DNA of 64,000 nt, from sequence record NC_048048.2; one strand, written 5' to 3'. Under the pieces are notes generated by a model. It saw nothing but the letters and a program-made list of their open reading frames with translations, made no database searches and had not been told where the DNA came from. The position numbers and the translations under genes were made by a program. Positions 2,872 to 19,267 of this stretch are shown here, piece by piece. The first letter of the stretch is position 1. The number at the start of each line of letters is the position of its first letter.

Positions 2872-3054
2872 TTGACGTCGGCCCATTTCGCCGCCGACTT
2901 GACGCCGGATCATTTGCCCGGCCGACTTGACGCCAGCGCATTTCCCCCAGACTTGACGCGAACGCATTTCGAATTTGACGCGAGCGCGTTTCCTTCCCAA
3001 ATTTGACGCGAGTCCATTTCAAACTTGACTTGACGTCATTTCATTTCCTTGACC
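2872..3054. repeat. Tandem TTGAC(G)..CATTTC array
   Basis: TTGAC at 2872, 2899, 2927, 2953, 2975, 3003, 3025, 3030, 3049, mostly followed by CATTT(C). Confidence 0.85.
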
Positions 3055-3079
3055 TGACGCCGTTCCGTTCCGCCGGGCC

Positions 3080-3305
3080 TTAAGGTTAACGGCGGATTAA
3101 CCATACGGCGAGTAAGGTTAATTTTCAAGGTTAACGGGTAGGATGAACGAACGTGGTTAACGGGCCTTAAGGTTAAATCTTAAGGTTAACAGGCGTTAAG
3201 GTTAACGCTTAGGGTGAAAAATTAAGGTTAACGCGCCCGGCCGGACCGCCCAGGCCCTACCGGCGCCGTTAAGGTTAACGCCAGGGGTCGAATCGTTAAG
3301 GTTAA
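3080..3305. repeat. Dense TTAAGGTTAA cluster
   Basis: Perfect 10-mers at 3080, 3167, 3180, 3196, 3222, 3269, 3296 plus partial copies, all in one orientation. Confidence 0.85.
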
Positions 3306-3310
3306 CACCC

Positions 3311-3427
3311 AAAAACAGCGAAAATCAGCAAAAATCGTCCAAAAACAGTGAAAATCAGCGAAAAATAGCGCTTTTCAGCCTGAAAATCGCAAAAAATCCG
3401 TGTTTTGGCCCATTTTTGGGTCATTTT
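3311..3427. repeat. Phased A/T tracts (intrinsically curved DNA)
   Basis: 12 A4-6/T4-5 tracts starting 3311, 3321, 3330, 3341, 3351, 3361, 3372, 3383, 3391, 3403, 3413, 3424 (about 10.3 bp period). Confidence 0.85.
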
Positions 3428-3496
3428 CGCGCTCTGACCCGCTTCTGGGCCAGCCCGAACGGGCGCCGGCCGGGTCGTGATCCCCCGGCCGGTGGG

Positions 3497-3607
3497 TCAG
3501 TGGAGAATCCAGAGCAACAGCGCCAGAGCCGCCAGTGACCAGCCGTTCAGCAATTTCAGGTGTGCGCCTCTCTCGTCTGCCGTGGCCGCTCGCCACGCTT
3601 CCTTCAT
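3497..3607 (-). CDS. Hydrophobic micropeptide, family copy 3 (36 aa from ATG or 20 aa from CTG at 3559)
   Basis: C-terminal LKLLNGWSLAALALLLWILH* aligns with the 20-aa peptides at 13822 and 17561. Confidence 0.55.
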   Translation of the reverse strand: MKEAWRAATADERGAHLKLLNGWSLAALALLLWILH

Positions 3608-3702
3608 CGCATACAAGAAAACTGTTGCCAAGCCCCAAAGATCGCTTGACAGCATAAAAGCCCAATGCGACAAGGGGACATCCAAACGGGAGACACCCCC
3701 CA

Positions 3703-4275
3703 ATGACCACCGAAACCCTCGACCTCCTCTATCCGGTCCTGATGCTGGAGCAGAAGATTCCCCACCGCGAAGGCATGTTGCGGCTGGCCATCGTCCTGCG
3801 CGACTTCGGCCCCAAGGCGCCCCATCGCTACGTCACCCACCTGCGGGCTGAAAACCCCGTGCCGGGCTCTGACCACGCCTTCACCTACAGCTATGAGCAT
3901 GGCACCTATTCGGCCGACCTGCGCCGCGCCCTGGCCGTCTATTTCGAGCGCGTCACCGAGCGGGTCATGACCGCCATGGTCGTGCTCCACGACCTGCCCG
4001 AGGTCGCGCCGCCGGCGCCGACCGTCACCGTGCCGCTCGAACTGGCCCAGACCGCCTATGGCCTGATCGATGACAACGAACTGGACCTCTCCAAGGCCTG
4101 CGGCAACGTCACCTTGGTCGAGGCCGCCATTACCGGTCTGGCCGCCGTCCTGGGACCGCGCCGCTACTTCCGCGATGTCGAGGAAGGCAACGCCAAGCTT
4201 CTGGAGGCCTTCGAAGCCCAGCAAGCCGCGCGTGACGCGGCCCTAGAAGCCGAATCCGAAGAGGAAGAGGCCTAA
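3703..4275 (+). CDS. Hypothetical protein (cassette gene)
   Basis: Follows promoter 3646 and GGGAGACACCCC leader/RBS. Confidence 0.85.
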   Translation: MTTETLDLLYPVLMLEQKIPHREGMLRLAIVLRDFGPKAPHRYVTHLRAENPVPGSDHAFTYSYEHGTYSADLRRALAVYFERVTERVMTAMVVLHDLPEVAPPAPTVTVPLELAQTAYGLIDDNELDLSKACGNVTLVEAAITGLAAVLGPRRYFRDVEEGNAKLLEAFEAQQAARDAALEAESEEEEA

Positions 4276-4445
4276 AAAGCCCGCCCAGGCCTCCCCGGCC
4301 TGGGCGTGAGCCCTCCAGGGGCCGTTAAGGTTAACGCCAGGGGCCGGGACGTTAAGGTTAAGGCCGAAAATAGTGCGAGAAACCTGTTGACACGCATTGC
4401 GGCCCTATGCGAGAACAAGGCTCCACTTCATGAGGAGCGCCAAGC

Positions 4446-5072
4446 ATGGCCCTGCCCGATCACTTCCTGGTTTCCGTCGACGGCTCGCTCTATGACACGC
4501 GGGTGCAAGGCTGGAACCAAGCCGCGCCGCTGCGGATCAATTACCGGATCGTCAATCGCGACATCCACGGCATGAGCGAGGTCAAGGCCGCCTTGCGCTG
4601 CGGCGCCTTTACCGACATCGGCGGCTATCCGCTGTATTTCGTCACGCAGGACGGCCGCGCCCTGTCCTTCGACAGCGCCCGCAAGATGCTCTATCAGATC
4701 GCCGACGATTTCCAGCATGGCGCCTCGACCGGCTGGCGGATCACCGGCGCCCTCATCAACTACGAGGATCACGACCTCGTCTGCGATCACAGCGGCGAGA
4801 AGATTCCGGCCGCCTATGATCCGGTGCAATGGGCCGCAGGCTGCAATGTCTCGGGCTTCATGCCCGACAGCGAGCCTTCCCACCATGCGACCTGGGAAGA
4901 GGCCAAGGAAGACTTGCGCGCCCAGGTCGAACTGGCGCGCGAGCCCTACGAGATCGGTTCGGACGAGGACGACGCCCTAGCCCGCGTCGCCCGCGCCCTG
5001 GAGGCCCTTAAGGAAGGCCAAGAGCTTAACATGGGCGCCATCGGCTATCGCTGGTGGGTCGAACGCCTGTAA
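4446..5072 (+). CDS. Hypothetical protein, conserved phage family (GGYPLYFVT..DG / INYED.DL.CDH)
   Basis: Follows promoter 4387; GAGGAG RBS. Confidence 0.85.
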   Translation: MALPDHFLVSVDGSLYDTRVQGWNQAAPLRINYRIVNRDIHGMSEVKAALRCGAFTDIGGYPLYFVTQDGRALSFDSARKMLYQIADDFQHGASTGWRITGALINYEDHDLVCDHSGEKIPAAYDPVQWAAGCNVSGFMPDSEPSHHATWEEAKEDLRAQVELAREPYEIGSDEDDALARVARALEALKEGQELNMGAIGYRWWVERL

Positions 5073-5093
5073 ACCAAGGAAAGGACCCCTTCC

Positions 5094-5240
5094 ATGTTCA
5101 TTCTCATCGTCGGCAATCCCAGCGACGGCTTCACTTATTACGGCCCCTTCGACGAGCATGACGACGCCGTCACCTATGCCGAGGCGACCGGCACCGAGGG
5201 CAACCCCTGGTGGGTCGCGCCCCTGGAAGCGGCGGACTAG
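5094..5240 (+). CDS. Small hypothetical protein (48 aa)
   Basis: AAGGA RBS; MFILIVGNPSDGFTYYGPFDEHDDAV...; manually translated. Confidence 0.7.
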   Translation: MFILIVGNPSDGFTYYGPFDEHDDAVTYAEATGTEGNPWWVAPLEAAD

Positions 5241-5246
5241 CCCGTC

Positions 5247-5381
5247 ATGACCGCTCTCGAAAAGCGCGGCTACAAGGCCGCCCAGGCGGGCGTCAAGTGG
5301 TGGAACAACCCCCACCCCAGCGGCTCCCCGGCCGCCTATCAGTGGGACAAGGGCCACACCCGCCACCGCCTCGGACGCTAG
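5247..5381 (+). CDS. Rmf/CrpP-fold-like small protein (44 aa)
   Basis: MTALEKRGYKAAQAGVKWWNNPHPSGSPAAYQWDKGH; the RGYxA..G....NP.......W..G pattern resembles Rmf RGYQAG...CPY...WLGGW. Confidence 0.5.
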   Translation: MTALEKRGYKAAQAGVKWWNNPHPSGSPAAYQWDKGHTRHRLGR

Positions 5382-5384
5382 CCG

Positions 5385-5410
5385 AGCCCAGGCCTTCGCG
5401 CCTGGGCTTT
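5385..5410 (+). terminator. Intrinsic terminator
   Basis: AGCCCAGGC/GCCTGGGCT stem followed by a short T run. Confidence 0.55.
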
Positions 5411-5560
5411 GCCCGCCCCCTGGGCGTTAAGGTTAAGGCCGAAAATAGTTCAAGAAACCTGTTGACACGCATCAGGCTCCCATGCGAGAACAGGATCAGA
5501 CGAAACGACAAGACCACAAAGGAGGCCGCCATGAAGTAGCGACAATCTGGAGCACAACTC

Positions 5561-5947
5561 ATGGAATTCTTCGTCCGCACCACGCTGGTCAGCATCGCCC
5601 GCCACTGGGAGGACGGCGCCGACGTGATCGCCACCTGCTATTGCGTCTGTGTCGAGTACCCGGACGGCGCCCGCTATGTCCACGACTATCAGCCGGTCGA
5701 CCGCTATGTCAGCGCCGACGACGAAGGCGAGCCCATCTATCCCTGGCGGGACGGCGAGGCCATCAAGGCCAAGCTGGACGCCTTGCGCGATGAGATCGCC
5801 GCCCACGTCGCCGCTGGCGGGAGCCTCGATCCTGGCCACTGGTTCGAGGTCGATCCGCGCTACGGCTCCCCGGCCTATATGGGCCTGGACGCCTTCGGGT
5901 TCTTCCGGGCGCGCGAAAAGCAAGAGGCCGCCGAGCGCGGCGACTGA
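5561..5947 (+). CDS. Hypothetical protein
   Basis: GGAG RBS, downstream of promoter 5462. Confidence 0.8.
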   Translation: MEFFVRTTLVSIARHWEDGADVIATCYCVCVEYPDGARYVHDYQPVDRYVSADDEGEPIYPWRDGEAIKAKLDALRDEIAAHVAAGGSLDPGHWFEVDPRYGSPAYMGLDAFGFFRAREKQEAAERGD

Positions 5948-5952
5948 CACCC

Positions 5953-5982
5953 AAAAGGCCCGCCCATCCGGCGGGCCTTTTT
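5953..5982 (+). terminator. Intrinsic terminator (possibly bidirectional)
   Basis: AAAAGGCCCGCC-CATCC-GGCGGGCCTTTTT. Confidence 0.85.
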
Positions 5983-6129
5983 CCTTGACCACCGCCTGGG
6001 GTTAACCTTAAGGCCGCGTTAAGGTTAAGCCCGCCCAGGCCCGTAAAAAGATGCAAGAAACCTGTTGACACGCATGGAAGGCCTATGCGAGAACAGGGCT
6101 CAACACCAACGCCAGCCGGGAGACACCCC

Positions 6130-6720
6130 ATGGCCCTCGTCACCGAATCCTTTGTCGTCGATCTGGCCTGCGGGCGCGCCCTGACCAACGGCGAGCGCCG
6201 CATGGTCGCCGCCGTGATCGACTCGCTTCTCGACCCGCATTTCAAGTCGACCGCCTGGGTCAAGGGCGGCGACCATCGCGAGGCCGTCCACTACTGCGAC
6301 CGCGTGACGCCCTACAGCCTGCACGGCGAGAACGCCAACGCCGCGCGCGTGCGCACCGAGGCCCTGACCACCCGCGACCATGACGCCCCCGTCCTGCTGT
6401 CGCTGTCGGTCGGCGACACCATCGGCGAAATCGCCCGCTTCTACACCATCGCCGCCGCTGTCGAATATCTCGACGGCAACCCCGATATCGATCCGACCTC
6501 GCTGCACATGGGCGCCTACACCATTGACGCCCCGTTCGGCGTGGCCAATGACATCGAGGCTGACAAGCTCCTCTATGACCTGGGCTATCGCCTGCACGCC
6601 ATGGCCGGCGGGTCCTGGACCTACAGCGATCCGCAGGGCCGCCTGTGGGACGGCGGCGGCAAGCGCGAAGCCGTGGTCATGATCGCTCTGAAGCAAGCCG
6701 CCGACGCTGAAGAGGCCTAA
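6130..6720 (+). CDS. Hypothetical protein
   Basis: Start reassigned to the ATG after GGGAGACACCCC; the ORF-track start at 6085 is the promoter ATG. Confidence 0.85.
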   Translation: MALVTESFVVDLACGRALTNGERRMVAAVIDSLLDPHFKSTAWVKGGDHREAVHYCDRVTPYSLHGENANAARVRTEALTTRDHDAPVLLSLSVGDTIGEIARFYTIAAAVEYLDGNPDIDPTSLHMGAYTIDAPFGVANDIEADKLLYDLGYRLHAMAGGSWTYSDPQGRLWDGGGKREAVVMIALKQAADAEEA

Positions 6721-6725
6721 GGCCC

Positions 6726-7049
6726 GTGAAGCGCCGTCACGCCCTCTTCCTGTCGGTGATCGCTTCGGCGCCCGACGTGGTGATCCTGCAAGCTCCGGCG
6801 CACTTCCTGCGCTGGAGCGACCACCGCAAGGCCATCCTGGCGTTCATGCGCCAGACCTACGGCGTCAAGGCCGCCGACGTTCACGCCGTCGAAGGCGTCG
6901 CCGGCTATGCCGAACCCGACCCGACCGACGACCCCGCCGTCCTGGCGCGCTTTCAAGCCGCCTTCGCCGGGTCTGACAACTTCCCCAAGGTCGCCCTGGC
7001 GGCCTGGGACGGGCAGGCCTATCGGCTGGTCCGCCGGCCTCTGGCGTGA
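6726..7049 (+). CDS. Hypothetical protein
   Basis: GTG start directly after the upstream gene. Confidence 0.7.
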   Translation: MKRRHALFLSVIASAPDVVILQAPAHFLRWSDHRKAILAFMRQTYGVKAADVHAVEGVAGYAEPDPTDDPAVLARFQAAFAGSDNFPKVALAAWDGQAYRLVRRPLA

Positions 7050-7173
7050 GGCCGCCACCGCCCAGGCTTAACCTTAACGTGGCGTTAAGGTTAAGGCCGA
7101 AAATAGTTCAAGAAAGCTGTTGACAGCATAGGAGGCTTATGCGAGAAAGGCTCATCGAAACGGGAGACACCCC

Positions 7174-7689
7174 ATGGACGACACCTATCCGCCCCTGACC
7201 CCCGGCCAGCAAGCCGCCCTGGTCGCCTTCGCCGACCAGCATGGCGGCCTGGGCGAGGCCTGGAAAGAGGCCCTGAGCGACGCCTGGAGGACGTGCAGCG
7301 AGCCCGATGCGCTCAAGGCCGACCTGCGGACCATCCGCAACACCTATGGCCCCTCCTGGCTCTATGACGAATACGCCTGGGGCTGGCGCCCGACCCTTCC
7401 CGACTGGGAGCGCGCCGGCCGCTGGACCGACACCCCGCCGCAGCCGACGCCGGGCAAGGCTCGCTGGAGCGCCGCCTTCGACCCGCCGGCCATCGGCGAC
7501 CGGGTGCGCGTGACCACCAACGGCCTGGGCTGGGCGCGGGTCACCGGCTACTTCGTCGAAGCCGACTGGCTGGGCGTGATTGTCAAGCTGGAGGCCCCGG
7601 CCGACTGGTATGTCAAACAGAACGGCGGCAACGTCCCCGGCCACAGCTTCGGGACCGAGATCGCCCTGACCGACCCCGCGACCGACTGA
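7174..7689 (+). CDS. Hypothetical protein
   Basis: Promoter 7120 plus GGGAGACACCCC leader. Confidence 0.85.
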   Translation: MDDTYPPLTPGQQAALVAFADQHGGLGEAWKEALSDAWRTCSEPDALKADLRTIRNTYGPSWLYDEYAWGWRPTLPDWERAGRWTDTPPQPTPGKARWSAAFDPPAIGDRVRVTTNGLGWARVTGYFVEADWLGVIVKLEAPADWYVKQNGGNVPGHSFGTEIALTDPATD

Positions 7690-7869
7690 CCTGGACGGCC
7701 CTGGCTGGGAGACCAGCCGGGGCGAGGCCTAACCCGGCGCGGTTAACCTTAACCGCCCATTAAGGTTAACCGCCGGCGCCCTGGGGCGGGCGAAAGAAAA
7801 TGCAAGAAAACTGTTGACACGCATCTGAGGGCTATGCGAGAAAGGGCCATCGAACAACGGAGGCCCCTC

Positions 7870-8712
7870 ATGGCCAAGCTATTCAGCGACCTTCAGGACC
7901 TTGCCAACTCGACCTATGTCGTGCGCATCGTCGACAATGGCGGCCAGAGCGCCGACCGCTACACGATCGTCACCGCCGATGGCGACTATTACGCCTACAG
8001 CGCCAATCCCGCCCATCCCCAAGGCGTGGGCCTGAGCGGCGAGGGCATCGACCCGCAAGTGCTGGTCGACTGGGTGGAGCGCGGCGAAGCCGTCGACCTG
8101 ACCATCGGCGAGCTACCCGAGGCCGCCGCCCGCTGTCTGCTGGCGTCGATCAACGCCAGCGTCGAGGACTTCCTGTCGGCTGTCGAGGACCCGACCAGCA
8201 ACGCCGTGGCCCCGACCCGCGAAAAGGCGGAGATCAATGACGGCGTGATGGATTGCTTCGGCAAGGGCATCTATCGCGTGGGCGAGGGTTTCGCCGTGCG
8301 CATGGATGGCCTGGACGCGGGCGATGATCGCGGCCCCTTCATGAGCGCTGTCGAGGCGGTCAAGGCCACCCTCCCCGATGAATACGCCTGGGCTGGCGAG
8401 GAATACCTGTCGCCGCGCGACATGACCAAGATCACGCCCGAAGCCAAGCCGCTCGTTCTGGTCCACGCCCTGGAGGCCATTCGCGACTATGAATATCAGC
8501 GCGACAACCCCGGCTCGTTCTTCGACGGGCTGAACGAGGACGACACTGACGCGGGCCTGGGCATCGTGCGCCGCACGCGCTACCTGTCCAAGGTCACCGA
8601 TGATGCGACCATCGTCGGGCTGATCGGCGAGGCGCCGGCCTTCGCCCTGGCCCATGAATGTCTCGACCAACTGTGGACCCTGGCGCAAGAGCGGTGGGAG
8701 GCGGGCCAGTGA
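7870..8712 (+). CDS. Hypothetical protein (acidic)
   Basis: Promoter 7814, GGAGG RBS; start reassigned to MAKLF. Confidence 0.85.
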   Translation: MAKLFSDLQDLANSTYVVRIVDNGGQSADRYTIVTADGDYYAYSANPAHPQGVGLSGEGIDPQVLVDWVERGEAVDLTIGELPEAAARCLLASINASVEDFLSAVEDPTSNAVAPTREKAEINDGVMDCFGKGIYRVGEGFAVRMDGLDAGDDRGPFMSAVEAVKATLPDEYAWAGEEYLSPRDMTKITPEAKPLVLVHALEAIRDYEYQRDNPGSFFDGLNEDDTDAGLGIVRRTRYLSKVTDDATIVGLIGEAPAFALAHECLDQLWTLAQERWEAGQ

Positions 8713-8912
8713 GCGCCCGCGAACGCCGCGCCCTCTCCGAACTGCTGGCCCTGTTCCACGCGGTCAACAGCGGCCACGTCAAGGGCCGCAACCCCTACGC
8801 CTTCCCGGCCGTCAAGCTCGCCAACGAGGTATTGACGGGCGACCCGCTGGACGGGGTTTCCACGTCGCCGAAGCCCTGGACCGGCATCGCGAGGCGGACG
8901 GCAAGGCCTTGA
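8709..8912 (+). CDS. Small hypothetical protein
   Basis: GTGA overlap with the upstream stop. Confidence 0.6.
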   Translation: MSARERRALSELLALFHAVNSGHVKGRNPYAFPAVKLANEVLTGDPLDGVSTSPKPWTGIARRTARP

Positions 8913-9067
8913 TTTTCGAGGTCGGCGGTTGCCCGGACGGCTGCTTGCTGTCCTACAGCGGCGCGGTTCCGCGCTGCGTCAACTGCGACACCGAATATCC
9001 CGAAGAAAACGGTTGACAGCATAAGGGAGCTATGCGAGAAAGGGTCATCAACGGAGACACCCCGCCC

Positions 9068-9208
9068 ATGTGGACCGAAAAGACCTTCAAGACCCGCGCC
9101 GCCAAGGAGGCCTGGATCGCCCGCAATGAAGACCGCTATCAGATCGTCGAGATCGTGGTCTGCAACGCCTACGGCGTGACCTACAAGCCCCTCCGACGCG
9201 TCTACTAG
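9068..9208 (+). CDS. Small hypothetical protein (46 aa)
   Basis: Promoter 9013, GGAGACACCC leader; MWTEKTFKTRAAKEAWIARN... Confidence 0.75.
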   Translation: MWTEKTFKTRAAKEAWIARNEDRYQIVEIVVCNAYGVTYKPLRRVY

Positions 9209-9218
9209 GAGACCTCGC

Positions 9219-9410
9219 ATGATCCCCGACTCGGTCCGTAACCCGCAAGATCATTGGACCCCCATCGCCACCCGCGCCAAGGCTGACGCCCTGGCCTATC
9301 GCTACAACCAAGATGACGCCGGCCCCGGCCTCTACGAGGTCCACGAAAAGGGCGAAAGCTTCGCCATCGCCTACTATGACGAAGACGGCGCCTTCTGCGG
9401 CTACGTCTAA
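9219..9410 (+). CDS. Small hypothetical protein
   Basis: AGGAG RBS; followed by a terminator. Confidence 0.75.
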   Translation: MIPDSVRNPQDHWTPIATRAKADALAYRYNQDDAGPGLYEVHEKGESFAIAYYDEDGAFCGYV

Positions 9411-9428
9411 CCCGCTCCTGTCAACTTG

Positions 9429-9466
9429 AAGGCCGGCGCCGCTCTCCTGGCGCCGGCCTTTTTCTT
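9429..9466 (+). terminator. Intrinsic terminator
   Basis: AAGGCCGGCGCC/GGCGCCGGCCTT stem plus TTTTTCTT. Confidence 0.85.
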
Positions 9467-9619
9467 GCCCGCCGCCTGGGTCTTAACCTTAAGGCGAGAT
9501 TAAGGTTAACGCCGCCTTAAGGTTAACCGGTGCCCCGCATCCCGCCCGGATGCAAAAAACCTGTTGACACGCATTTCGACCCTATGCGAGAAAGGCGACG
9601 AACACGGGAGACACCCCTT

Positions 9620-10618
9620 ATGACCACGACCATTCCCGGCGCCGAGCATACGATGATCGGACAAGCCGCCTATCGCTCGACCAAGCGCCCCGACCAAGTG
9701 CGCGAGATGGCCTATGGCGCGTTCCCGGCCGCGACGTCGGACTCGCCCTTCGCCGTCAAGCCGGCCTGTGGCAAGGTCCCGAGCGCGCGCGTGCTGGAGG
9801 ACTTCGACCCCGCCGACGTCTTCACGACCAGAGCCAATGATCGCGGCGGCTTCTATGCCTCCGCCAACTTCGGCGGCTCTGAGGTGTCGTGGATCAGCAT
9901 CGCCGGCTATGGCGACACCGAGGAGGCCGCCCGCGCCGATCTCATGGCCCGGTTCATCGCCGACCGCGACGGCAAGGGCAAATTTGGCCCTCACCATCCC
10001 CTGGTCGGCTATGACTGGGGCTATAAGCTCGCCCCGTTCTGGGACATGCTGGAGCGCGAGGCCGCCATTCGCCAGCCCTTCAAGCGCCAGCTTTACCTGG
10101 GCAAGCTGAAGTCCGGCCGCCCTAATCCCAAGGGCTTTGACGTGTTCGTCGATGTCGAATGGACCGGCGTGCGCCTGTCGCTGTCGGGCGTCATCGGCCC
10201 CAAGGCCAATGGCAACGCCTGGGACGGCGCAGGCCAGATCGTCGGCAGTCTCAAGCGCAAGGACTTTCTGGAGTTCGCCCCGTCCTGGCATTATGGATCG
10301 GCCCTTGACGGTCTGGTCCAGGCCTGGACCCGCTGGCACCTGAACGACCTGCGCGCCGGCACGCTTCGGCAGGAAGACCACCTGCGCGGCTATGAGGCCA
10401 AGCGCAACATTGAGCAGGCCAAGGCCGCCGGCGCCCATTCTCTCGACGCCACCCGCGCCGAACTGGCGCGCGTCCATATGGAGCCCGACACCTGGGAGCG
10501 CCACAACGGCCGGCCCTATAGCTACGGCTCCGCATGGCTTCGCGAGGAGGTCCCCACCTACGTTCTCGACTTCCTGCGCAATCTCCCCGCCCCCACCAAA
10601 ATCAGCCCCTGGAGGTAA
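9620..10618 (+). CDS. Hypothetical protein (332 aa; WHLNDLRAG / YGSAWLREE motifs)
   Basis: Promoter 9564 plus GGGAGACACCCC leader; start reassigned. Confidence 0.85.
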   Translation: MTTTIPGAEHTMIGQAAYRSTKRPDQVREMAYGAFPAATSDSPFAVKPACGKVPSARVLEDFDPADVFTTRANDRGGFYASANFGGSEVSWISIAGYGDTEEAARADLMARFIADRDGKGKFGPHHPLVGYDWGYKLAPFWDMLEREAAIRQPFKRQLYLGKLKSGRPNPKGFDVFVDVEWTGVRLSLSGVIGPKANGNAWDGAGQIVGSLKRKDFLEFAPSWHYGSALDGLVQAWTRWHLNDLRAGTLRQEDHLRGYEAKRNIEQAKAAGAHSLDATRAELARVHMEPDTWERHNGRPYSYGSAWLREEVPTYVLDFLRNLPAPTKISPWR

Positions 10619-10625
10619 CCCGCCC

Positions 10626-11060
10626 ATGGCCATCAACACCGCCGGCCTCGTCGGCAAGCTCAAGGAAGCCCTCGCCGCCGCCCCCAACCTGACCCTATGG
10701 GCCAAGGAACGCGGCCTCTTCCATCAGAACGTTTCGGCCGCCGCGCGCGGCGACACCGTGCCGCAAGAAAGCATCGCCAAGGCCCTGGGCTTCCGACGCG
10801 TCCACGTCCAGGCCTATCTGGCGCCGGGCGAAGCCCTGCCGCTCCTGCCGCCCGGCTGGGAGGAGGTGCTTCCCGGTTCGGCGACCCCGGTCGACTGGAA
10901 GCCCCGCGACAAGGCCGCCGCCCCCGCCCCGCGCCGGGTCGGTTCGCCCGACCAGATGGCCAAGGCCCGCGACGCGCGCCGGCCGCGTTCCGCGCCGGTC
11001 CAGCCCCCGGCCCAAACCGCCGGCAAGCCTCGCCGCAAGAAAGTGCAAGAAACCGGTTGA
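10626..11060 (+). CDS. Putative HTH DNA-binding protein
   Basis: GGAGG RBS; NLTLWAKERGLFHQNVSAAARGDTVPQESIAKALG resembles an XRE/Cro-type helix-turn-helix; basic Pro-rich tail. Confidence 0.6.
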   Translation: MAINTAGLVGKLKEALAAAPNLTLWAKERGLFHQNVSAAARGDTVPQESIAKALGFRRVHVQAYLAPGEALPLLPPGWEEVLPGSATPVDWKPRDKAAAPAPRRVGSPDQMAKARDARRPRSAPVQPPAQTAGKPRRKKVQETG

Positions 11061-11110
11061 CAGCATAAGGCGGCTATGCGAGAAAGGCTCATCACTTCTG
11101 GAGCAAGCCC

Positions 11111-11320
11111 ATGGCCGCCTTCATCTGCACCGCCGATCTCAACGCCCTGGTCGAGGACATCGCCTATGACGTGGAGATGGAAGACCGCGCCGCCGAGGAA
11201 CTCGACGGCCTGGACTTTGGCGACCGCTGTTACTACGGCGACCGCGCTTACCATGGCCAGCTTGAGCTTGCCCGGATCATCGAGACGGCCGTCGCCGCTC
11301 ATCCCATCCTGTACGCCTAG
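11111..11320 (+). CDS. Small acidic hypothetical protein
   Basis: Promoter 11057, GGAG RBS. Confidence 0.75.
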   Translation: MAAFICTADLNALVEDIAYDVEMEDRAAEELDGLDFGDRCYYGDRAYHGQLELARIIETAVAAHPILYA

Positions 11321-11336
11321 CAGAGGAGGCGCCGCT

Positions 11337-11549
11337 TTGCCACGCTACCGCACCGACTACAGCGAAGACGACGGAAAAACCGTCATCATCGAGGAAGGCC
11401 TGACGAGGACGCAGGCCATGCAAAAGGCCGCGATCCTGTCGCGCAAGCACGGGACCGCCTACGCCGTCGCCTCCGACGACAAGGGCCGCGACACCGGCCA
11501 AAGGGTCTATGCTGACGGCCGGTTCAGCTACCAAGACGACAAGTTCTAA
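11337..11549 (+). CDS. Small hypothetical protein
   Basis: GAGGAGG RBS, TTG start (LPRYRTDY...). Confidence 0.65.
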   Translation: MPRYRTDYSEDDGKTVIIEEGLTRTQAMQKAAILSRKHGTAYAVASDDKGRDTGQRVYADGRFSYQDDKF

Positions 11550-11555
11550 GGCAAG

Positions 11556-11580
11556 AGGCCCGGAGCGATCCGGGCCTTTT
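11556..11580 (+). terminator. Intrinsic terminator
   Basis: AGGCCCGGA-GCGA-TCCGGGCCT plus T run (GNRA loop). Confidence 0.85.
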
Positions 11581-11725
11581 GTCTGTCCCCCGCCCGGCGA
11601 TAACCTTAACGCCGCGTTAAGGTTAACCCCCTGGGACGGGGGGCGCCGCCGCAAAAACTGCAAGAAAACTGTTGACACGCATTTCGACCCTATGCGAGAA
11701 AGGCGCATCAACCACGGAGGACAAC

Positions 11726-12457
11726 ATGTCCACGCACCCGCTGATCGCCGCCGCCCTGGCCAATCTTCGCGAAGGCCCGGCCATGGTCGCCGGCCCCGAC
11801 CACGTCACCAAGGTCACGTCCTACGAACTGACCCGCGCGGTCATGTTCAAGGCCGCCGACCAGATCGAACGGGCTCTGAGCGATTTCCCCGCCCCGCCCG
11901 CCTGCCTGGGCGCCTTCCTGATGACCGAGTTCGACCGCCTGGGCGACAACTGGGGCGCCCTGGGCGACGCCATCACCGAAGGCGAGGCCCTGGCCAATGC
12001 TGAAACCGTCCTGGCGTGGTACTTCAACGCCACCCGTGACGACGGCGACCCGGACGGCTACACGCTCAAACTCGCTGGCGCCCTGCCCAACGACGCCGAG
12101 GCCGCCCGCATCCGCCGCGACTACGCCGCCGCCCTGGAGGCGCAAGAGCAGGCCAAGGCCGCCGAGGCTCGCGCCTTCGCCGACCGTCACGCCGCCCTAG
12201 GTTCGGCCGAAGCCGTCGCCGACCTCCTGGGCTCGCTGTTCGACACGCCGCGCACCGCCGCCGAGGCCCTGGGCTACAGCTTCCATTTCGTCCCGGTGAT
12301 CGGCGGCGAGATCGAGGGCGAACGCGCCTGGATCGGCGAGGACAAGGCCGGCGAGCGCGTCCATGGCGACTACGCCAGCGCCGACCAAGCCGCCCGCGCC
12401 GCCCTCATCTACCACGTGCGCGCCAACCAAGCCGCCCAAATCGTCAAGGACGCCTGA
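11726..12457 (+). CDS. Hypothetical protein
   Basis: Promoter 11672, GGAGG RBS; start reassigned to MSTHP. Confidence 0.85.
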
Positions 12458-12459
12458 CC

Positions 12460-13086
12460 ATGACCGCCGCCGCATCCCTCTTCGAACAAGCCCAGATCGA
12501 GGCCGCTCAAGCCGCCATCGACGCCAACACCGCGCGCGTTGGGCTGGAGACCGAGGACGCCACGCCCGGAACCGACCTTTTCCACCTGCTGGGCTCGCTG
12601 CTGACCTGGGCCGACGCCTGGGCCGTGGACTTCGACGACATCCTGTCTCAGGTCCGCGAACCGGTGAACCTCTCCAAGACCGTGACCCGCTTTGATCCGG
12701 CCACCTATGGCCAAGACCAGCGGCTTGCGGCCATCCGCGCCAATCTCGACCAGCGCAACACCCCTTCCGTTCCGGTCCTGACCCGCGACGAGGCCGAAAC
12801 CGAGGCCATGCGCGATCTCGCCGCCGTGGTCGGCAAGGTGATCAAGGTCCACGATATCACCGGCTATTTCGGCGAGACGGGCCAAGAGGACTTGCGCCCC
12901 CACGACGGCGCGCCGGCCTTTTCGGTGATCGTCCTGCCGTCCGACCGGGACGACGTGATCTACTGGAATGACGAGCATCTGGACGTTCGGTGGAACGTCA
13001 CCCCCGCGCCGGGCGAAACCCGCCTCTACGAACTGCGCTCGCTCTGGGTGTTCGGGCGCGGCTATGTCATCGAAGGCGAGGGCTGA
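12460..13086 (+). CDS. Hypothetical protein
   Basis: Operon-packed (TGACCATG junction). Confidence 0.8.
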   Translation: MTAAASLFEQAQIEAAQAAIDANTARVGLETEDATPGTDLFHLLGSLLTWADAWAVDFDDILSQVREPVNLSKTVTRFDPATYGQDQRLAAIRANLDQRNTPSVPVLTRDEAETEAMRDLAAVVGKVIKVHDITGYFGETGQEDLRPHDGAPAFSVIVLPSDRDDVIYWNDEHLDVRWNVTPAPGETRLYELRSLWVFGRGYVIEGEG

Positions 13087-13088
13087 TC

Positions 13089-13397
13089 ATGGCCATGCCC
13101 CTGGGCTTGCGGACCACCGCCACCAGCTACGCCATTGACGTGGACGATGACCAGTTTCTGGCCATGATCCAGGCCGAAGGCTACAAGGGCGGTGATTTCG
13201 AGCCGTCCCTGTTCGACAAGCTGCAAAAGACCCCCGCCCGCGACATCGAATATAACGGCCACTTCGGCGCGTCGGTCTATTTCACCCTCACCGAGGAAGA
13301 CGACACCCCCGCCCTACGCGCCGAGCTTGGCCGGATGATCGCCGAACACCTAACCCTCTGCGTCGCCCACATGGCGACCTACGACAAGGACGCCTGA
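13089..13397 (+). CDS. Hypothetical protein
   Basis: TGATCATG junction; start reassigned. Confidence 0.75.
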   Translation: MAMPLGLRTTATSYAIDVDDDQFLAMIQAEGYKGGDFEPSLFDKLQKTPARDIEYNGHFGASVYFTLTEEDDTPALRAELGRMIAEHLTLCVAHMATYDKDA

Positions 13398-13399
13398 CC

Positions 13400-13705
13400 A
13401 TGCTGAATATCGAGGACCAGACGATTCGCCTTCGCGAGGAAGGCAAGAACAAGACCACCACCGTCATTGGCGGGGTGCTGCTGTTCTTCTCCTATTCGAC
13501 CCTGGTCGGCTTTCGCTGTCCGCGCCTGGGGATGGTGATCAACCCGGCCGCCAAGAGCTACGGCGTCACCACCGCCCGCCACGTCGGCGAATTTGGCCTA
13601 GGCGCGCCGGGCGTGGGTAAAACCGCCACCGAAGAAGACTTTCAGCGCCTCGCCATGGGCGCGGTCATGGGTTCGTCCGGGCCTGACTACCTACTGTTGA
13701 ATTAA
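13400..13705 (+). CDS. Hypothetical protein
   Basis: TGACCATG junction. Confidence 0.75.
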   Translation: MLNIEDQTIRLREEGKNKTTTVIGGVLLFFSYSTLVGFRCPRLGMVINPAAKSYGVTTARHVGEFGLGAPGVGKTATEEDFQRLAMGAVMGSSGPDYLLLN

Positions 13706-13821
13706 GCCCCGAGACGAGCACTAGGGCTGTCACGAATCCCCTCATCTATGACAGCTTAAGAGCCCGTTTAGTCTTCCCTGTACTCTGTTGCGCCAGTATC
13801 GGCGCGGAAAGTGATGCGCCT

Positions 13822-13884
13822 ATGAAGCTCCTCGAAGGTGGCGGACTGCTGGCCCTGTGCTTCCTTTTCTGGCTCCTCCACTGA
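13822..13884 (+). CDS. 20-aa hydrophobic micropeptide, copy 1 (MKLLEGGGLLALCFLFWLLH)
   Basis: Near-identical protein at 17561 with almost only synonymous nucleotide differences. Confidence 0.75.
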   Translation: MKLLEGGGLLALCFLFWLLH

Positions 13885-13948
13885 CAAGGCTGTTGACAGC
13901 ATCAAGGCCCTATGCGAGAAAGGCTCATCGCCACCGGAGACACCCGCG

Positions 13949-14215
13949 ATGACCGATTACGACGATTGGGGCCAAGAGGCCTATATGGACCACCTCCATG
14001 ATCAGGCCGTTGACGAGGCTTTCGAGCGCCACGCCGACGACGCCTATGAGGACGACCTGGGCGCCGAAGACCCGGACCTCGAATTCCCCGATGAGGCGGA
14101 CGACGAGGAAGACCTTCGCCGGGCCGAAGGGCTCATGCCCTGGGCGACCCCCGAGGGCGTCGAGCCTGGGCAGTTCCCCCGCCGGGCCTATGACGACGAC
14201 GAAATCCCGTTCTGA
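13949..14215 (+). CDS. Highly acidic protein ending in an SSB-like tail (YDDDEIPF)
   Basis: Promoter 13893, GGAGACACCC leader; 32 of 88 residues D/E, no Lys. Confidence 0.85.
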   Translation: MTDYDDWGQEAYMDHLHDQAVDEAFERHADDAYEDDLGAEDPDLEFPDEADDEEDLRRAEGLMPWATPEGVEPGQFPRRAYDDDEIPF

Positions 14216-14228
14216 CCTCCTCCCTTCG

Positions 14229-14255
14229 AAAGGCCCCGCGCGGGCCTTTCTTTTT
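14229..14255 (+). terminator. Intrinsic terminator
   Basis: AAAGGCCC/GGGCCTTT stem plus CTTTTT. Confidence 0.75.
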
Positions 14256-14425
14256 GCCCCGCGCCTGGGGTTAACCTTAACGCCGCCTTAAGGTTAACCC
14301 GGCCGGATCGTTTTTCGTCTTTTGTGTCGGGCCGTCTTTCGTTTTCCGTGTCGAGGTGCAAGAAAGCTGTTGACAGCATAAAAGCCCTATGCGAGAAAGG
14401 CTCATCGCAACCAAGGAGCCCGACC

Positions 14426-14617
14426 ATGGGACTCAAGATCGAAATCGACACCGGCAACGAGGCCTTCCAAGGCGTGGCCGGCGAGCATTGCGCCACCCTC
14501 CTGCATGAGGTCGCCCGCAAGCTCGATCAAGGCGCCCGCGCCGGCAATATCTACGACGGCAACGGCAACAAGGTCGGGACCTACGAACTCGACCACACCG
14601 ACGCCCCGGAGTCGTGA
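14426..14617 (+). CDS. Small hypothetical protein
   Basis: Promoter 14370, AAGGAG RBS; MGLKIEIDTGNEAF... Confidence 0.8.
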   Translation: MGLKIEIDTGNEAFQGVAGEHCATLLHEVARKLDQGARAGNIYDGNGNKVGTYELDHTDAPES

Positions 14618-14620
14618 GCC

Positions 14621-14947
14621 GTGGCCAGCTACGTCATCCAGATCAGCGTGAACGTGGAGGTCGATGACCTCCCCGTTCTGTTGGCCGCCGCCATGGCCAA
14701 GGCCACGGGCGACGACGGCCTGACCGAAGATCAAGCCCGCGATATCCTGACCAACTCCGACCCTCTGGGCCGGCCGGATGTCAAGGCCTGTCTGACCATG
14801 CTGTTTGATCCGGGCGTCAGCCCGGACGGCACGTCGATCAATGACAGCATCGTCACCCGCGAGGACTACGACCAAGACGAGGCCATGGACGCCTATGAGG
14901 CCGCCCACGGCGAGGACGAGGAAGGGGAAGGCGATGACGAGGACTAG
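14621..14947 (+). CDS. Hypothetical acidic protein
   Basis: GTG start, operon-packed. Confidence 0.75.
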   Translation: MASYVIQISVNVEVDDLPVLLAAAMAKATGDDGLTEDQARDILTNSDPLGRPDVKACLTMLFDPGVSPDGTSINDSIVTREDYDQDEAMDAYEAAHGEDEEGEGDDED

Positions 14948-15284
14948 GAGCAAGAAGCGCGTCCCGCAACGCCTGCTTCTGGCCAATCGCGCGCCCCTGG
15001 TCGCCGGGCCTGACCCCGCCACCCGCCGCCACTGGTGGGAGCTTCTGGAGAGCGTCGGCGAGCCGCGCGACCTTGAGGCCCTGCTGGTCGTGGCGATTGA
15101 CCAAGACGCGGCCGAAACCGTCGCCGGGGTCTTTCCGCTCGCCGGCGCCGACTATGAAGCCCAGAGCCGCAAGGCCGACGCCCTGGCCGCCGCCACCACC
15201 CGCCCCCGCAGCCCTGGCCAGCGCGACGCGCTCAACGCCTATGTGCTGCACGTCAATGACCCGAACGCCGAGCATCATCCATGA
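14934..15284 (+). CDS. Hypothetical protein
   Basis: Start reassigned to MTRTRSKK; short overlap with the upstream gene. Confidence 0.65.
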   Translation: MTRTRSKKRVPQRLLLANRAPLVAGPDPATRRHWWELLESVGEPRDLEALLVVAIDQDAAETVAGVFPLAGADYEAQSRKADALAAATTRPRSPGQRDALNAYVLHVNDPNAEHHP

Positions 15285-15532
15285 GCTATTCCGGCCCGAT
15301 CACCATCGCCCAAGGCCAGCGCTTCCAACTAGACAGCTACGGCAACGGCGCGGCCTATGCCTTCTATGACCGCACCGCCGGCGCCAGCGTCTGGCTGGAC
15401 GGCGACGACGCCACCCAGTTTCGCGCCGACTTCGACAACGCCGAAGACCGCCGCCCCCATGACGGGCCTGACCAGATCATGGCCCATCTGTGGGACGAAC
15501 ACGACTACGGCGCCGCCGCCACGCCGCTCTAA
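15281..15532 (+). CDS. Hypothetical protein
   Basis: ATGA overlap; followed by a hairpin at 15535-15566. Confidence 0.75.
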   Translation: MSYSGPITIAQGQRFQLDSYGNGAAYAFYDRTAGASVWLDGDDATQFRADFDNAEDRRPHDGPDQIMAHLWDEHDYGAAATPL

Positions 15533-15675
15533 GTCAAGGCCCGCCCATCCCCCTGGGCGGGCCTTGTCCTGGGCGATCGGCGTTAACCTTAACGCGCAAG
15601 AAAACTGTTGACACGCATTGCAGCCCTATGCGAGAAAGAGCGCCTAGGCCGCTTTGGCCCCTGGAGACTTGCGTC

Positions 15676-16257
15676 ATGGAACACCGCGACTTCGTTCCCC
15701 ACATCATCACCGCCCGCACCGTGGATGGAACCGTCTACTACGAGTCCAGCCACTGCACCGCCTTCCATCTGGGCTATGCCCGCGCCATGGACAAGGCCGA
15801 CGCCGAGCGCCGGGCCGCCGCCTGGAAGCGCGCGGAAAAGGACGGCGCCCCGCAAGCCACCATCGACGAGGGAACCTATGGGATCACCGTCGTGGCCACC
15901 ACCTGGGAGGCCCTGGACAAGGCCCGCGCCCATCGCGCCGAGCTTGAGCGCCTGGAGGCCAATTTCCTCGCCGAGGAGGCCCATGACGACCAGTTCGACG
16001 ACTATGAAGAACCGGTCATGAGCCCCGAGGATATCGCTGCCGAGGAAGAGGCCGCCCGCGACTATCTGGCCACCATCCAGCCCCATAAGGCCGGCGACGT
16101 GGTGCGGATCACCGACGAGGGCCATCCCCATTTCGGGGCGCTGGCCACCGTCGCCGAGGCCGAATGGAGCGGCTATCTCGTCCTTGACCTGGGCGCGGGC
16201 CTGACCTGGGGCTGGGCGACGGGCGTGCAATCGACGGCCGATTTCCCCCAGCCTTGA
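15676..16257 (+). CDS. Hypothetical protein
   Basis: Promoter 15608, GGAGA RBS; start reassigned to MEHRD. Confidence 0.8.
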   Translation: MEHRDFVPHIITARTVDGTVYYESSHCTAFHLGYARAMDKADAERRAAAWKRAEKDGAPQATIDEGTYGITVVATTWEALDKARAHRAELERLEANFLAEEAHDDQFDDYEEPVMSPEDIAAEEEAARDYLATIQPHKAGDVVRITDEGHPHFGALATVAEAEWSGYLVLDLGAGLTWGWATGVQSTADFPQP

Positions 16258-16365
16258 AAGCTGGCCTCGCGCCAGCAAAAAGGCCCGTCCCCTGGCGGGG
16301 CGGGCCTTGTCCGGTCCGATCGGGATTAACCTTAACGAGAGATTAAGGTTAACGCGCCCTTAAGG

Positions 16366-16611
16366 TTAACTGGTGGCGTTCTTGCGCGTCGTGGCCTGGG
16401 GATTGGCCTTGAGCCATGCGTCGGCTTCCGTGCGGGTCGAGAACGGCGCCCCGCCAATGCCCTGCGTGCCGTCATCCCATTGAATGGTCCAACCCACGTC
16501 CTTGATTTCCCAATCCTCCGCCACGCCATGGGGAATCGGCGTATGAAGCGCGATGCGGGTAAAGGGCGCGCGCTTGAGTTGACGGATGCGCGCCGGAATG
16601 ACTTGCGGCAT
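16366..16611 (-). CDS. Hypothetical protein; the only substantial minus-strand gene inside the cassette array
   Basis: Own promoter on the minus strand (TTGACA 16690-16685, then GCTACATT); protein-like composition. Confidence 0.6.
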   Translation of the reverse strand: MPQVIPARIRQLKRAPFTRIALHTPIPHGVAEDWEIKDVGWTIQWDDGTQGIGGAPFSTRTEADAWLKANPQATTRKNATS

Positions 16612-16659
16612 GTGTGGAATTTCCTTGACAAAGGCCTTGCCCCATGGGCGGCCCGAAAG

Positions 16660-16697
16660 GCGAATGTAGCAAGCGGCGCTTTCGTGTCAAGAAATGC
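16660..16697 (-). promoter_or_regulatory. RpoD-type promoter (CGCATTTC-TTGACA-N14-GCTACATT)
   Basis: 7/8 match to the Caulobacter -10 GCTANAWC; divergent from cassette promoter 16717. Confidence 0.6.
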
Positions 16698-16789
16698 GAC
16701 ATGGGCTAGAATCCTGTTGACACGCATTGCGGTCCTATGCGAGAAAGATCGGGCAAAGGCGCATCCCGCGCCGCTGGGAGACACCCCGC

Positions 16790-17560
16790 ATGGACCTGAC
16801 CACCTTTACGGCCAAGGCTGATTTCGTGCTCTGCAATGAGCCGGTGACCATCACCGTCAAGCCCGCCGGCCGCCCGCTCTACCTGTCGTTTTCCATCGAC
16901 CAGATCGGCATGATCGGCGGCGCCGAGGAGCTTTACGCCAAGGCCGAACAACACGGCGTCGAGGACCTGATAACGGTTCTCAACATTTCCAACGTCCTGT
17001 CGCTGAAGTCCATCGAGACCTATGACGACGAAGACCGCGAGGCCGTCGAAAGCCTGCGCTACGCCCTGCTCATGCTCGACGGCGAGCGCTACGCTTCGGA
17101 TGTCCAGTTCGAGGACGTGGACGAGGCCGAGTTTTCCAACCGCGACGACACCATTGACAGCCGGCAAATCGTCGAGCGGGTCGAGGTGCTTCGGAGCGCC
17201 CTGGAAACCGCCGGCTTCGACACCGCCGACCTGTCCGCCCTGGAAGACCTCGACGCCGACGAAGCCGTCAAGGACGCCGACCAGCGCGACGCCTTCAACG
17301 CCATCCGCGAGGAATTCCTGATCCTGGCGCGCATGGTCGAGGAGGGCGGCAACTACGGCGAGGATTGGCGGTTCGGCGCGACTCTGGTCCGCGAATCCTA
17401 CTTCACCGAGTTCGCGCAAGAAGAGTGCGAAAGCCTGGGCTTCATCTCCAAGGACTTCCCGTCCTGGATCGCCATCGACTGGGAAAAGACCGCCGAAACG
17501 ATGCTACACGACTACACCGAAATCGACTTCGACGGCGTGAGCTACTACGTCCGCGCCTAG
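16790..17560 (+). CDS. ArdA-like acidic anti-restriction (DNA mimic) protein
   Basis: Very D/E-rich; C-terminal FPSWIAIDWEKTAETMLHDYTEIDFDGVSYYVR resembles the ArdA C-terminus from memory. Confidence 0.6.
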   Translation: MDLTTFTAKADFVLCNEPVTITVKPAGRPLYLSFSIDQIGMIGGAEELYAKAEQHGVEDLITVLNISNVLSLKSIETYDDEDREAVESLRYALLMLDGERYASDVQFEDVDEAEFSNRDDTIDSRQIVERVEVLRSALETAGFDTADLSALEDLDADEAVKDADQRDAFNAIREEFLILARMVEEGGNYGEDWRFGATLVRESYFTEFAQEECESLGFISKDFPSWIAIDWEKTAETMLHDYTEIDFDGVSYYVRA

Positions 17561-17623
17561 GTGAAGCTCCTCGAAGGCGGCGGCCTGCTCGCGCTCTGCT
17601 TCCTCCTCTGGTTGCTTCACTAA
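17561..17623 (+). CDS. 20-aa hydrophobic micropeptide, copy 2 (MKLLEGGGLLALCFLLWLLH)
   Basis: GTG immediately after the ArdA-like TAG; synonymous divergence from 13822. Confidence 0.75.
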   Translation: MKLLEGGGLLALCFLLWLLH

Positions 17624-17626
17624 ACC

Positions 17627-17662
17627 CGGCCGGCGTCCATGACCTGGGCGCCGGCCTTTTCT
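17627..17662 (+). terminator. Intrinsic terminator
   Basis: GGCCGGCG../..CGCCGGCC stem followed by TTTTCTT. Confidence 0.65.
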
Positions 17663-17720
17663 TACCGCGCCGATCGGGGTTAACCTTAACGCCGTCTTAA
17701 GGTTAACGGCGGGCCTGGAG

Positions 17721-17849
17721 GCGAGGGCGTCAAGGCCGCGAGCTAGGATTACACGCGATGGCTTAGCCGGCGTCCAGCCGGCGGCGCCTTCGACCACCGC
17801 GAGGCGGCCTTGACCCTCGCAATCTCGCCGATCCGCGACCAAGTGTCAA
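17721..17849 (-). ncRNA. Candidate antisense small RNA with its own promoter
   Basis: Minus-strand TTGACA (17849-17844)-N15-GCGAGATT (17828-17821); 11+6 bp closing stem 17721-17739/17804-17820; no credible ORF. Confidence 0.45.
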
Positions 17850-17934
17850 CCGTTTTCTTTTTCCAAGAAACCTGTTGACACGCATCGAACGCCTATGCGA
17901 GAAAGACTCAACGTCAACGCCTGGAACCCTATCC

Positions 17935-18591: not shown

Positions 18592-18765
18592 GCCAAGCCC
18601 GCCGCGCCCGGCCTCAACGCCGGGCGCGTGTCGGGTTTTGGTTTTTCAAGGTCCTGTTAAGGTTAACGAAAAAAGCCCTCGGACGGCCTGAGAAAAACGC
18701 AAGAAAACTGTTGACACGCATCCAAGCCCTATGCGAGAAAGGCTCATCGCAACGGGAGACACCCC

Positions 18766-19053: not shown

Positions 19054-19265
19054 CCCGTCGCCCTGCCTTTCTGACCGTCCTGGGCGGGATTGGCCTCATC
19101 CTGGCCAGCTTCGTCCTTTCGGCCGCCAGCGCCCCGGAAAAGCGGGTTCTCGTGGGTCAATACTGCGACGGCGACCCCGTGCGCCTCTACGGCCTGGAAG
19201 ACGGCGAGGAAGCCGCGCAAGCGTGCGCCATCGTCGAAGTCCACGCCCTGCCCAAGGGCTTCTGA
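19050..19265 (+). CDS. Small secreted/membrane protein
   Basis: ATGA overlap; N-terminal hydrophobic segment. Confidence 0.65.
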   Translation: MTRRPAFLTVLGGIGLILASFVLSAASAPEKRVLVGQYCDGDPVRLYGLEDGEEAAQACAIVEVHALPKGF

Positions 19266-19267
19266 CC

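Follow-up and report, generated by a model that had tools for sequence, protein, structure and literature searches.

Several small bacterial membrane proteins, including AcrZ, MgtS, and MgrB, regulate larger membrane proteins. Among type I toxins, IbsC (19 aa) and ShoB (26 aa) form membrane helices and exert their activity there (PMC8309996), and YohP (27 aa) is a small protein that inserts post-translationally into bacterial membranes (PMC7549839). In phiCbK-like phages, genes of the terminal repeats are under CtrA control, and no function is known for any of them (PMC9437464); one gene from such a repeat, CcrColossus gp022 (AFU87892.1 / YP_006988256.1), is annotated as a 24-aa hypothetical protein. 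Here, a family of hydrophobic micropeptides that includes CcrColossus gp022 is delineated from three 20-codon open reading frames (ORFs), designated c1, c2, and c3, in a 64,000-nucleotide (nt) stretch of DNA (the window), which megablast identified as nt 1-64000 of the 317-kb Caulobacter phage CcrSC (MH588547.2; genus Bertelyvirus). The existence, conservation, and protein-level selection of these micropeptide genes are documented below, along with gene anatomy and family distribution; save for the single uncharacterized annotation of gp022, the family is new to the literature. All three ORFs fall within the 23,946-bp direct terminal repeat (DTR) of CcrSC, in which every gene is annotated as encoding a hypothetical protein:

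13822..13884, plus strand: c1, 20 codons, ATG to TGA, peptide MKLLEGGGLLALCFLFWLLH
17561..17623, plus strand: c2, 20 codons, GTG to TAA, peptide (M)KLLEGGGLLALCFLLWLLH
3497..3559, minus strand: c3, 20 codons, CTG as the homologous first codon, TGA stop, peptide (M)KLLNGWSLAALALLLWILH

The positions of these ORFs in a first-pass annotation of the window match the sequence exactly, and a recount agreed with its comparison of c1 and c2, which are separated by eight synonymous codon differences, one amino acid change (F16L), an ATG/GTG swap at the start, and a TGA/TAA swap at the stop. A fuzzy six-frame search of the 64 kb recovered c1, c2, and c3 and no others. The homologous start position of c3 contains no ATG, GTG, or TTG, and CTG is its probable start codon. 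None of the three ORFs is annotated in MH588547.2 or in the records of the related phages CcrBL9, RB23, and BL47.

To characterize the conservation of these ORFs, the four genomes (CcrSC, CcrBL9, RB23, and BL47) were read using six-frame scans and a peptide profile. Six-frame scans of CcrBL9, RB23, and BL47 located c1 and c3 in all three and c2 in CcrBL9 alone; the 10 copies across the four genomes are each precisely 20 codons long, with no indel or frameshift inside any of them. The c1 and c3 loci were detected by BLAST in 9/9 sequenced Bertelyvirus genomes. The c1 copy of CcrBL9 is identical to that of CcrSC, and the RB23 copy carries 17 nt differences that alter just 4 amino acids. The ratio of nonsynonymous to synonymous divergence (dN/dS, Nei-Gojobori) is 0.09 for c1 and 0.11 for c3 between CcrSC and RB23, and 0.02-0.05 for c1 versus c2, with Fisher p values of 5e-6 to 6e-4 over these three Bertelyvirus comparisons, in which synonymous sites are near saturation (pS 0.5-0.7) and the differences sum to 15/2/26 at codon positions 1/2/3. 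Over five lineage pairs, including CcrPW/Colossus and phiCbK/CcrBL10 (discussed below), dN/dS ranges from 0.02 to 0.16. The proposed frame (+1) keeps 17-19 of 21 residues, as opposed to 8-12 in the other five frames. Likewise, the peptide profile assigned 37-46 bits to the 10 family copies and <8 bits to all other stop-to-stop fragments in the window and four related loci.

The sequences surrounding the ORFs are less constrained. Indels occur in the flanks (11 nt directly past the c1 stop, 1-nt indels 5′ of c3, and others in the c3 hairpin), and similarity among the paralogues c1, c2, and c3 is limited to the 63-nt ORF, with nothing beyond. The low dN/dS, the bias of differences toward wobble positions, and the fixed ORF length despite indels in the flanks show that purifying selection at the protein level acts on the 20-residue product. 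The proposal that these ORFs represent a real, selected peptide unseen by ORF callers is thus upheld by the dN/dS values, the codon-position bias, and the unannotated status of the genes; in particular, the homologues were checked for frameshifts and for dN/dS near 1, and they proved to contain no frameshifts and to have ratios far below that value.

Beyond Bertelyvirus, relatives of the micropeptide appear to occur across the phiCbK-like subfamily (Dolichocephalovirinae). A profile built from Bertelyvirus copies only is blind to the forms present in CcrColossus and phiCbK, which were found by screening other DTRs for short hydrophobic ORFs, followed by shuffling and synteny analysis. CcrPW encodes a 24-codon ORF with a TTG start, an AAGGAG element 6 nt upstream (also present in CcrColossus), and a terminator downstream; its CcrColossus orthologue is gp022, likewise followed by an annotated terminator. 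The two ORFs differ by 11 nt (4/0/7 by codon position), corresponding to a dN/dS of 0.14. In global alignments of the c1/c2 peptides with those of CcrPW/Colossus, 0-1 of 5000 composition-preserving shuffles matched the observed score, and 3-16 of 5000 did so for c3. In addition, CcrSC gp024, located 5′ of c1, is homologous to CcrPW gp023, located 5′ of the CcrPW micro-ORF (55% identity, E 1e-27). This shuffle-tested similarity, taken together with the homologous upstream gene, indicates that c1 is the orthologue of CcrColossus gp022; c2 and c3 are Bertelyvirus-specific paralogues. The family signature is also seen in gp022 (M-R-x-I-E ... L-E-G-x-G, then a hydrophobic run and L-L-H immediately before the stop), which, like c1 downstream of gp024, lies in a DTR downstream of a gp024 homologue. 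In contrast to the Bertelyvirus copies, gp022 encodes 24 rather than 20 residues due to a 4-residue insert, has a TTG start with a strong Shine-Dalgarno (SD) sequence, and occupies one locus instead of three.

A third form is a 26-codon hydrophobic ORF located between gp017 and gp018 of phiCbK (JX100813, 8758-8838) and unannotated in the records checked. The peptide is identical in 14 phiCbK-like records, with variants in RBC57, BL57, and CcrBL10; the 26-codon ORF of CcrBL10 (~8182-8259, between gp014 and gp015) is also unannotated, and its comparison with phiCbK gives a dN/dS of 0.16. In Ccr29, the phiCbK-type ORF is present in two copies per DTR. For phiCbK/CcrBL10 versus CcrPW/Colossus peptides, 0-3 of 5000 shuffles matched the alignment score. 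Direct similarity between the Bertelyvirus and phiCbK/CcrBL10 peptides is weak (shuffle p 0.035-0.3), and the phiCbK type is counted in the family because the Colossus type links it transitively. All aligned members share a signature of M-[KR], L-[EN]-G, a stretch of 11-12 hydrophobic residues, and H (or WRF) immediately 5′ of the stop, and every family copy is located in a DTR.

No further true members emerged when IMG/VR, GTDB genomes, and JGI metagenomes were scanned with degenerate patterns. The matches in GTDB (7) and the JGI metagenomes (34) were attributed to chance, being in unrelated taxa or on low-GC (0.29-0.50) contigs, and the extra IMG/VR matches were likewise chance occurrences. 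Bertelyvirus peptides were absent from a 15-billion-protein collection.

The peptides of the family (20-26 residues) begin with M-[K/R], after which some have a 4-residue insert, and continue with L-[E/N]-G-x-x, 11-12 hydrophobic residues, and a terminal H or WRF, such that position 2 is basic, the L-[E/N]-G turn is conserved, and an aromatic residue occurs in the tail. Mean hydropathy (GRAVY) is 1.3-1.5, and a value of at least 1.3 is reached by just 6 of the 317 window ORFs of 15-30 codons, c1 and c2 among them. The lipobox consensus of bacterial lipoprotein signal peptides, L-[AS]-[GA]-C, is not present, since c1 and c2 have L-A-L-C (Leu at -1) and c3 lacks Cys. Small hydrophobic proteins are a known class, of which the micropeptide is a member. 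As with YohP-class small membrane proteins (PMC7549839, PMC12648545), it would form a single hydrophobic helix, comprises <50 aa, and is mostly missed in annotation; in contrast to that class, including AcrZ, MgtS, and MgrB, it is phage-encoded and shorter, with 11-14 uninterrupted hydrophobic residues.

On the basis of this hydrophobic composition, the precedents of membrane peptides, and the conservation of the peptide in unrelated genomic contexts, the favored interpretation, held with moderate confidence, is that a helical micropeptide is produced early in infection, acts in trans, and is probably inserted in the membrane. Membrane insertion is plausible for a peptide of this build. The peptide would act in trans as a single hydrophobic helix, inserting post-translationally into the host inner membrane, where it could bind a host membrane complex (serving, for example, DNA entry, pilus or flagellum function, or cell-cycle signaling) or perturb the membrane directly. 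A role as a toxin, exclusion factor, or modulator, as suggested in the first-pass annotation, is putative.

A number of observations weigh against this interpretation. The uninterrupted hydrophobic run of 11-14 residues is short compared with a canonical transmembrane helix, and insertion would place a glycine triplet and E5 inside the bilayer. Searches of Pfam, PHROGs, NCBIfam, PADLOC, and PDB returned no homologue of known function, and the above scans of IMG/VR, GTDB, and JGI metagenomes no host homologue. Translation of the micro-ORFs is itself predicted from the sequence: c1 has only a weak SD-like GAAAG as a ribosome-binding signal, and c3 needs a rare, weak CUG start. Finally, a hairpin lies closely 3′ of the ORF in c2, c3, and CcrPW/Colossus, a layout that also fits a cis-regulatory leader.

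The CcrSC DTR contains a recurrent promoter-like motif, TTGAC(A)CGCAT-N8-CYATGCGA, with 22 instances on the plus strand (4387-23519), all of them 29-74 nt 5′ of an annotated start, and a single minus-strand instance, 5′ of c3; no instance was found beyond 23.5 kb, in the remaining ~40 kb of the window. The sequence GTTAACCTTAA is present in 40 copies in the DTR (1307-22987), where chance alone predicts 0.05; most copies are arranged in inverted pairs, creating TTAA-N7-TTAA CtrA boxes just 5′ of the promoter motif. It has already been published that CtrA sites are enriched in the DTRs of phiCbK-like phages, CcrSC among them, and that an intergenic fragment from between gp017 and gp018 of phiCbK, cloned by Mascolo et al., drives CtrA-dependent transcription in Caulobacter (PMC9437464). 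This fragment (primers in supplementary file 16 of that study), used in the literature as the 'gp018 promoter', spans the phiCbK micro-ORF and does not itself place the promoter relative to the ORF. The DTR may be organized as many short, host-type, CtrA-linked early transcription units, with CcrSC making the peptide from three differently wired loci.

The region surrounding c1, which begins 116 nt past gp024, includes the following elements:

13724..13756, plus strand: conserved block GGGCTGTCA-N15/16-TGACAGCC, between the gp024 stop and c1
13893..13917, plus strand: DTR-type promoter motif of gp025, TTGACAGCAT-N8-CTATGCGA, 32 nt before the gp025 start

The upstream block is the sole conserved stretch from gp024 to c1 in the alignment of CcrSC, CcrBL9, and RB23, and may represent a hairpin that follows gp024 or, alternatively, a variant DTR promoter (CTGTCAC-N12-CTATGACA). 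The gp025 promoter motif starts 8 nt past the c1 stop codon, is conserved in RB23, and takes the place of the downstream hairpin, which c1 lacks. With its ATG start, c1 would be expressed as the distal member of a gp021-gp024 unit or from its own weak promoter. Inverted repeats of the GTCAC...GTGAC type are located 5′ of c1 in CcrSC (13726-13755) and of the phiCbK micro-ORF (8680-8707), and the micro-ORF of CcrPW comes after five GTCAC(G)/CGTGAC repeats (CcrPW 13000-13140); these repeats may constitute a common cis element.

The c2 ORF is tightly packed between an annotated gene and a terminator:

16790..17560, plus strand: gp032, annotated coding sequence, whose TAG stop abuts the c2 GTG
17628..17663, plus strand: canonical intrinsic terminator that begins 5 nt past the c2 stop and consists of a 12-bp GC stem and the run TTTTCTT

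The TAG GTG junction is present in both CcrSC and CcrBL9, and c2, starting at GTG, is probably translated by termination-reinitiation coupling to gp032. In RB23, the stop codon of the gp032 homologue is directly joined to the orthologous terminator; because stop codon and terminator are retained side by side and c2 is precisely missing, c2 is an insertion or deletion of exactly ORF size. A stretch of ~110 nt (17727-17835, plus strand), situated between the c2 terminator and the gp033 promoter, is 100% identical in CcrSC, CcrBL9, and RB23, compared with 82-87% for adjoining coding DNA. It is unique in the window, matches neither an Rfam family nor a tRNA, folds as an extended stem-loop (-63 kcal/mol, z = -3.2), and is a candidate structured RNA or cis element.

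In the case of c3, the following elements are present:

3607..3631, minus strand: promoter-like motif TTGGCAA-N10-GTATGCGA, 47 nt 5′ of the c3 CTG, the sole minus-strand case of the DTR promoter class
3578..3597, minus strand: stem-loop CGTGGCGAGCGGCCACGGCA in the 5′ untranslated region, 20 nt, identical in CcrSC, CcrBL9, and RB23 and unique in the window
3567..3574, minus strand: SD-like GAGAGAGG, 7 nt 5′ of the c3 CTG; AAGGAGG at the same spacing in RB23
3466..3492, minus strand: GC hairpin, 4 nt past the c3 stop, without a T-run

The -35 part of the promoter motif is fully conserved in RB23. The reading frame 5′ of c3 is not conserved, owing to a 1-nt indel between CcrSC and CcrBL9 and an in-frame stop in RB23, and the leader stem-loop falls in three different frames in the three genomes; for these reasons, translation of c3 most likely begins at the CTG. 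In the 3′ hairpin, the CcrSC stem (CCGGCCGGG) and the RB23 stem (GCGCGCGACCTG) are wholly different (compensated), and the loop GGATCACGA is kept. The conserved loop and leader motifs of c3 are unique in the window, and its predicted transcript fold is not exceptional (z = -0.9). These features suggest a ~140-nt monocistronic unit that would comprise its own promoter, a structured leader, an SD sequence, a weak CUG start, and a 3′ hairpin. Transcription of c3 heads into a 1.3-kb non-coding stretch (2232-3496) with three repeat arrays, namely T-rich GCTGATTTTC-like units (~3310-3440), ~9 GTTAACCTTAA boxes (3080-3306), and ~7 GCGTCAAGTC...AAATG units (2869-3060). This stretch may be an origin or another cis-acting region.

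Among the neighboring proteins, gp021-gp025, gp032, gp033, and gp005 contain no informative domains. The small annotated DTR proteins gp004 (48 aa; 2085-2231), gp011 (6726-7049), and gp035 (19050-19265) each include a strongly hydrophobic 15-residue segment, and the DTR may thus encode several membrane proteins.

The main rival to a trans-acting membrane peptide is a cis-acting leader or arrest peptide, whereby a ribosome at or near the stop codon would modulate the adjacent hairpin or terminator and set read-through into the DNA further downstream, which would be gp024 in CcrPW, the sequence 3′ of c2, and, for c3, the 1.3-kb repeat array. Leader and arrest peptides, such as TnaC, the Erm leaders, and attenuators, are of similar length to the micropeptide, whose ORF end is likewise beside a terminator-like hairpin at several loci. 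Known regulatory leader peptides fit inside the ribosomal exit tunnel, as would peptides of 20-26 residues. The 4-5 nt separating the c2 and c3 stops from their GC hairpins agree with this mechanism, as does the compact order in CcrPW/Colossus, where the ORF is followed by 30 nt, the terminator, and then directly the SD sequence and ATG of the next gene, leaving no promoter space. In contrast, c1 is trailed by a promoter instead of a hairpin, and the RB23 terminator is present without c2. Three paralogues in unrelated contexts have kept the amino acid sequence, which points to a product that diffuses. The peptide also has the composition of a membrane helix, and the residues before the stop vary by clade (LLH versus WRF). 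Moreover, the minimum-energy and consensus folds of c3 consist of independent hairpins (z = -0.9), with no obvious antiterminator and no alternative RNA pairing found. A leader function is thus considered unlikely, albeit worth weighing.

A second alternative, that the micropeptides belong to type I toxin-antitoxin-like modules, in which membrane-depolarizing toxins are held in check by antisense RNAs (as in Ibs/Sib and ShoB/OhsC), is improbable. The micropeptide does resemble IbsC and ShoB in its very short length (20 aa), its strong hydrophobicity (GRAVY 1.3-1.5) and helix-forming composition, and its multicopy occurrence (PMC8309996), and the structured, perfectly conserved 5′ leader and weak start of c3 suggest restrained translation. 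It has no sequence similarity to these toxins, however, and is encoded in the early region of virulent phages, which have no obvious need for an addiction module. None of the copies has an opposite-strand promoter-like site, a computational search found no complementary stretch of at least 15 nt elsewhere in the 64 kb, c1 and c2 reside in or behind ordinary operons, and neither PADLOC nor the Pfam toxin families gave matches. Of the first-pass proposal of a phage micropeptide family with type I toxin affinities, the family is therefore borne out by homologues across genera, whereas the toxin-antitoxin assignment was not supported, as no antisense partner was found in the 64 kb.

It is highly improbable, and on the sequence evidence effectively excluded, that the micropeptides are not independent genes but C-terminal membrane tails, produced by gp032 read-through for c2 and by longer upstream ORFs for c1 and c3. 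In support of such tails, c2 is in frame with gp032 across the TAG, and c3 of CcrSC forms the end of a 68-codon ORF. The in-frame state of c2 is automatic, however, because its GTG abuts the TAG, and read-through of the gp032 stop by general TAG suppression is unlikely because TAG ends 10/39 DTR genes and ARAGORN found no tRNA gene within the 64-kb window. In addition, the sequences 5′ of c1 and c3 show no protein-level conservation, being in other frames or interrupted by stops in relatives, and conservation starts precisely at the start codon. Least probable of all is a non-coding repeat (a DNA operator or RNA motif, open in one frame by accident), which the richness of the DTR in repeated regulatory motifs (23 copies of the promoter motif and 40 of GTTAACCTTAA) might suggest but which the codon-position pattern effectively refutes, given divergence at wobble positions (pS 0.5-0.7) with amino acids kept, far lower conservation in the other five frames, and no Rfam match.

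An extension of the favored trans-acting membrane helix, quite unlikely at present, is that all phiCbK-like phages rely on the micropeptide as a core, dosage-tuned factor for host takeover, delivered with the first-entering DNA and docking as a single helix on a host inner-membrane machine that is connected with the biology of the phage. Candidate docks include the CckA/DivL/PleC kinases that set CtrA activity, the Cpa pilus, and the flagellar export apparatus. If this were the case, the peptide would either link infection with the cell cycle ('lytic deferment') or prevent superinfection. With its 20 residues, it would rank among the smallest phage effectors directed at a specific protein, and it would have spread inside the DTR as an ORF-only 63-nt cassette.

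The phiCbK-like phages are standard tools in Caulobacter cell-cycle research. The rest of the DTR is nearly unalignable among them (8-12% DNA identity; PMC9437464), and the peptide gene, kept across four genera and missed by nearly all annotations, counts among the few DTR functions that are conserved. The gene provides a clean example of a 20-codon gene established by comparative sequence alone, with a product small enough for synthesis.

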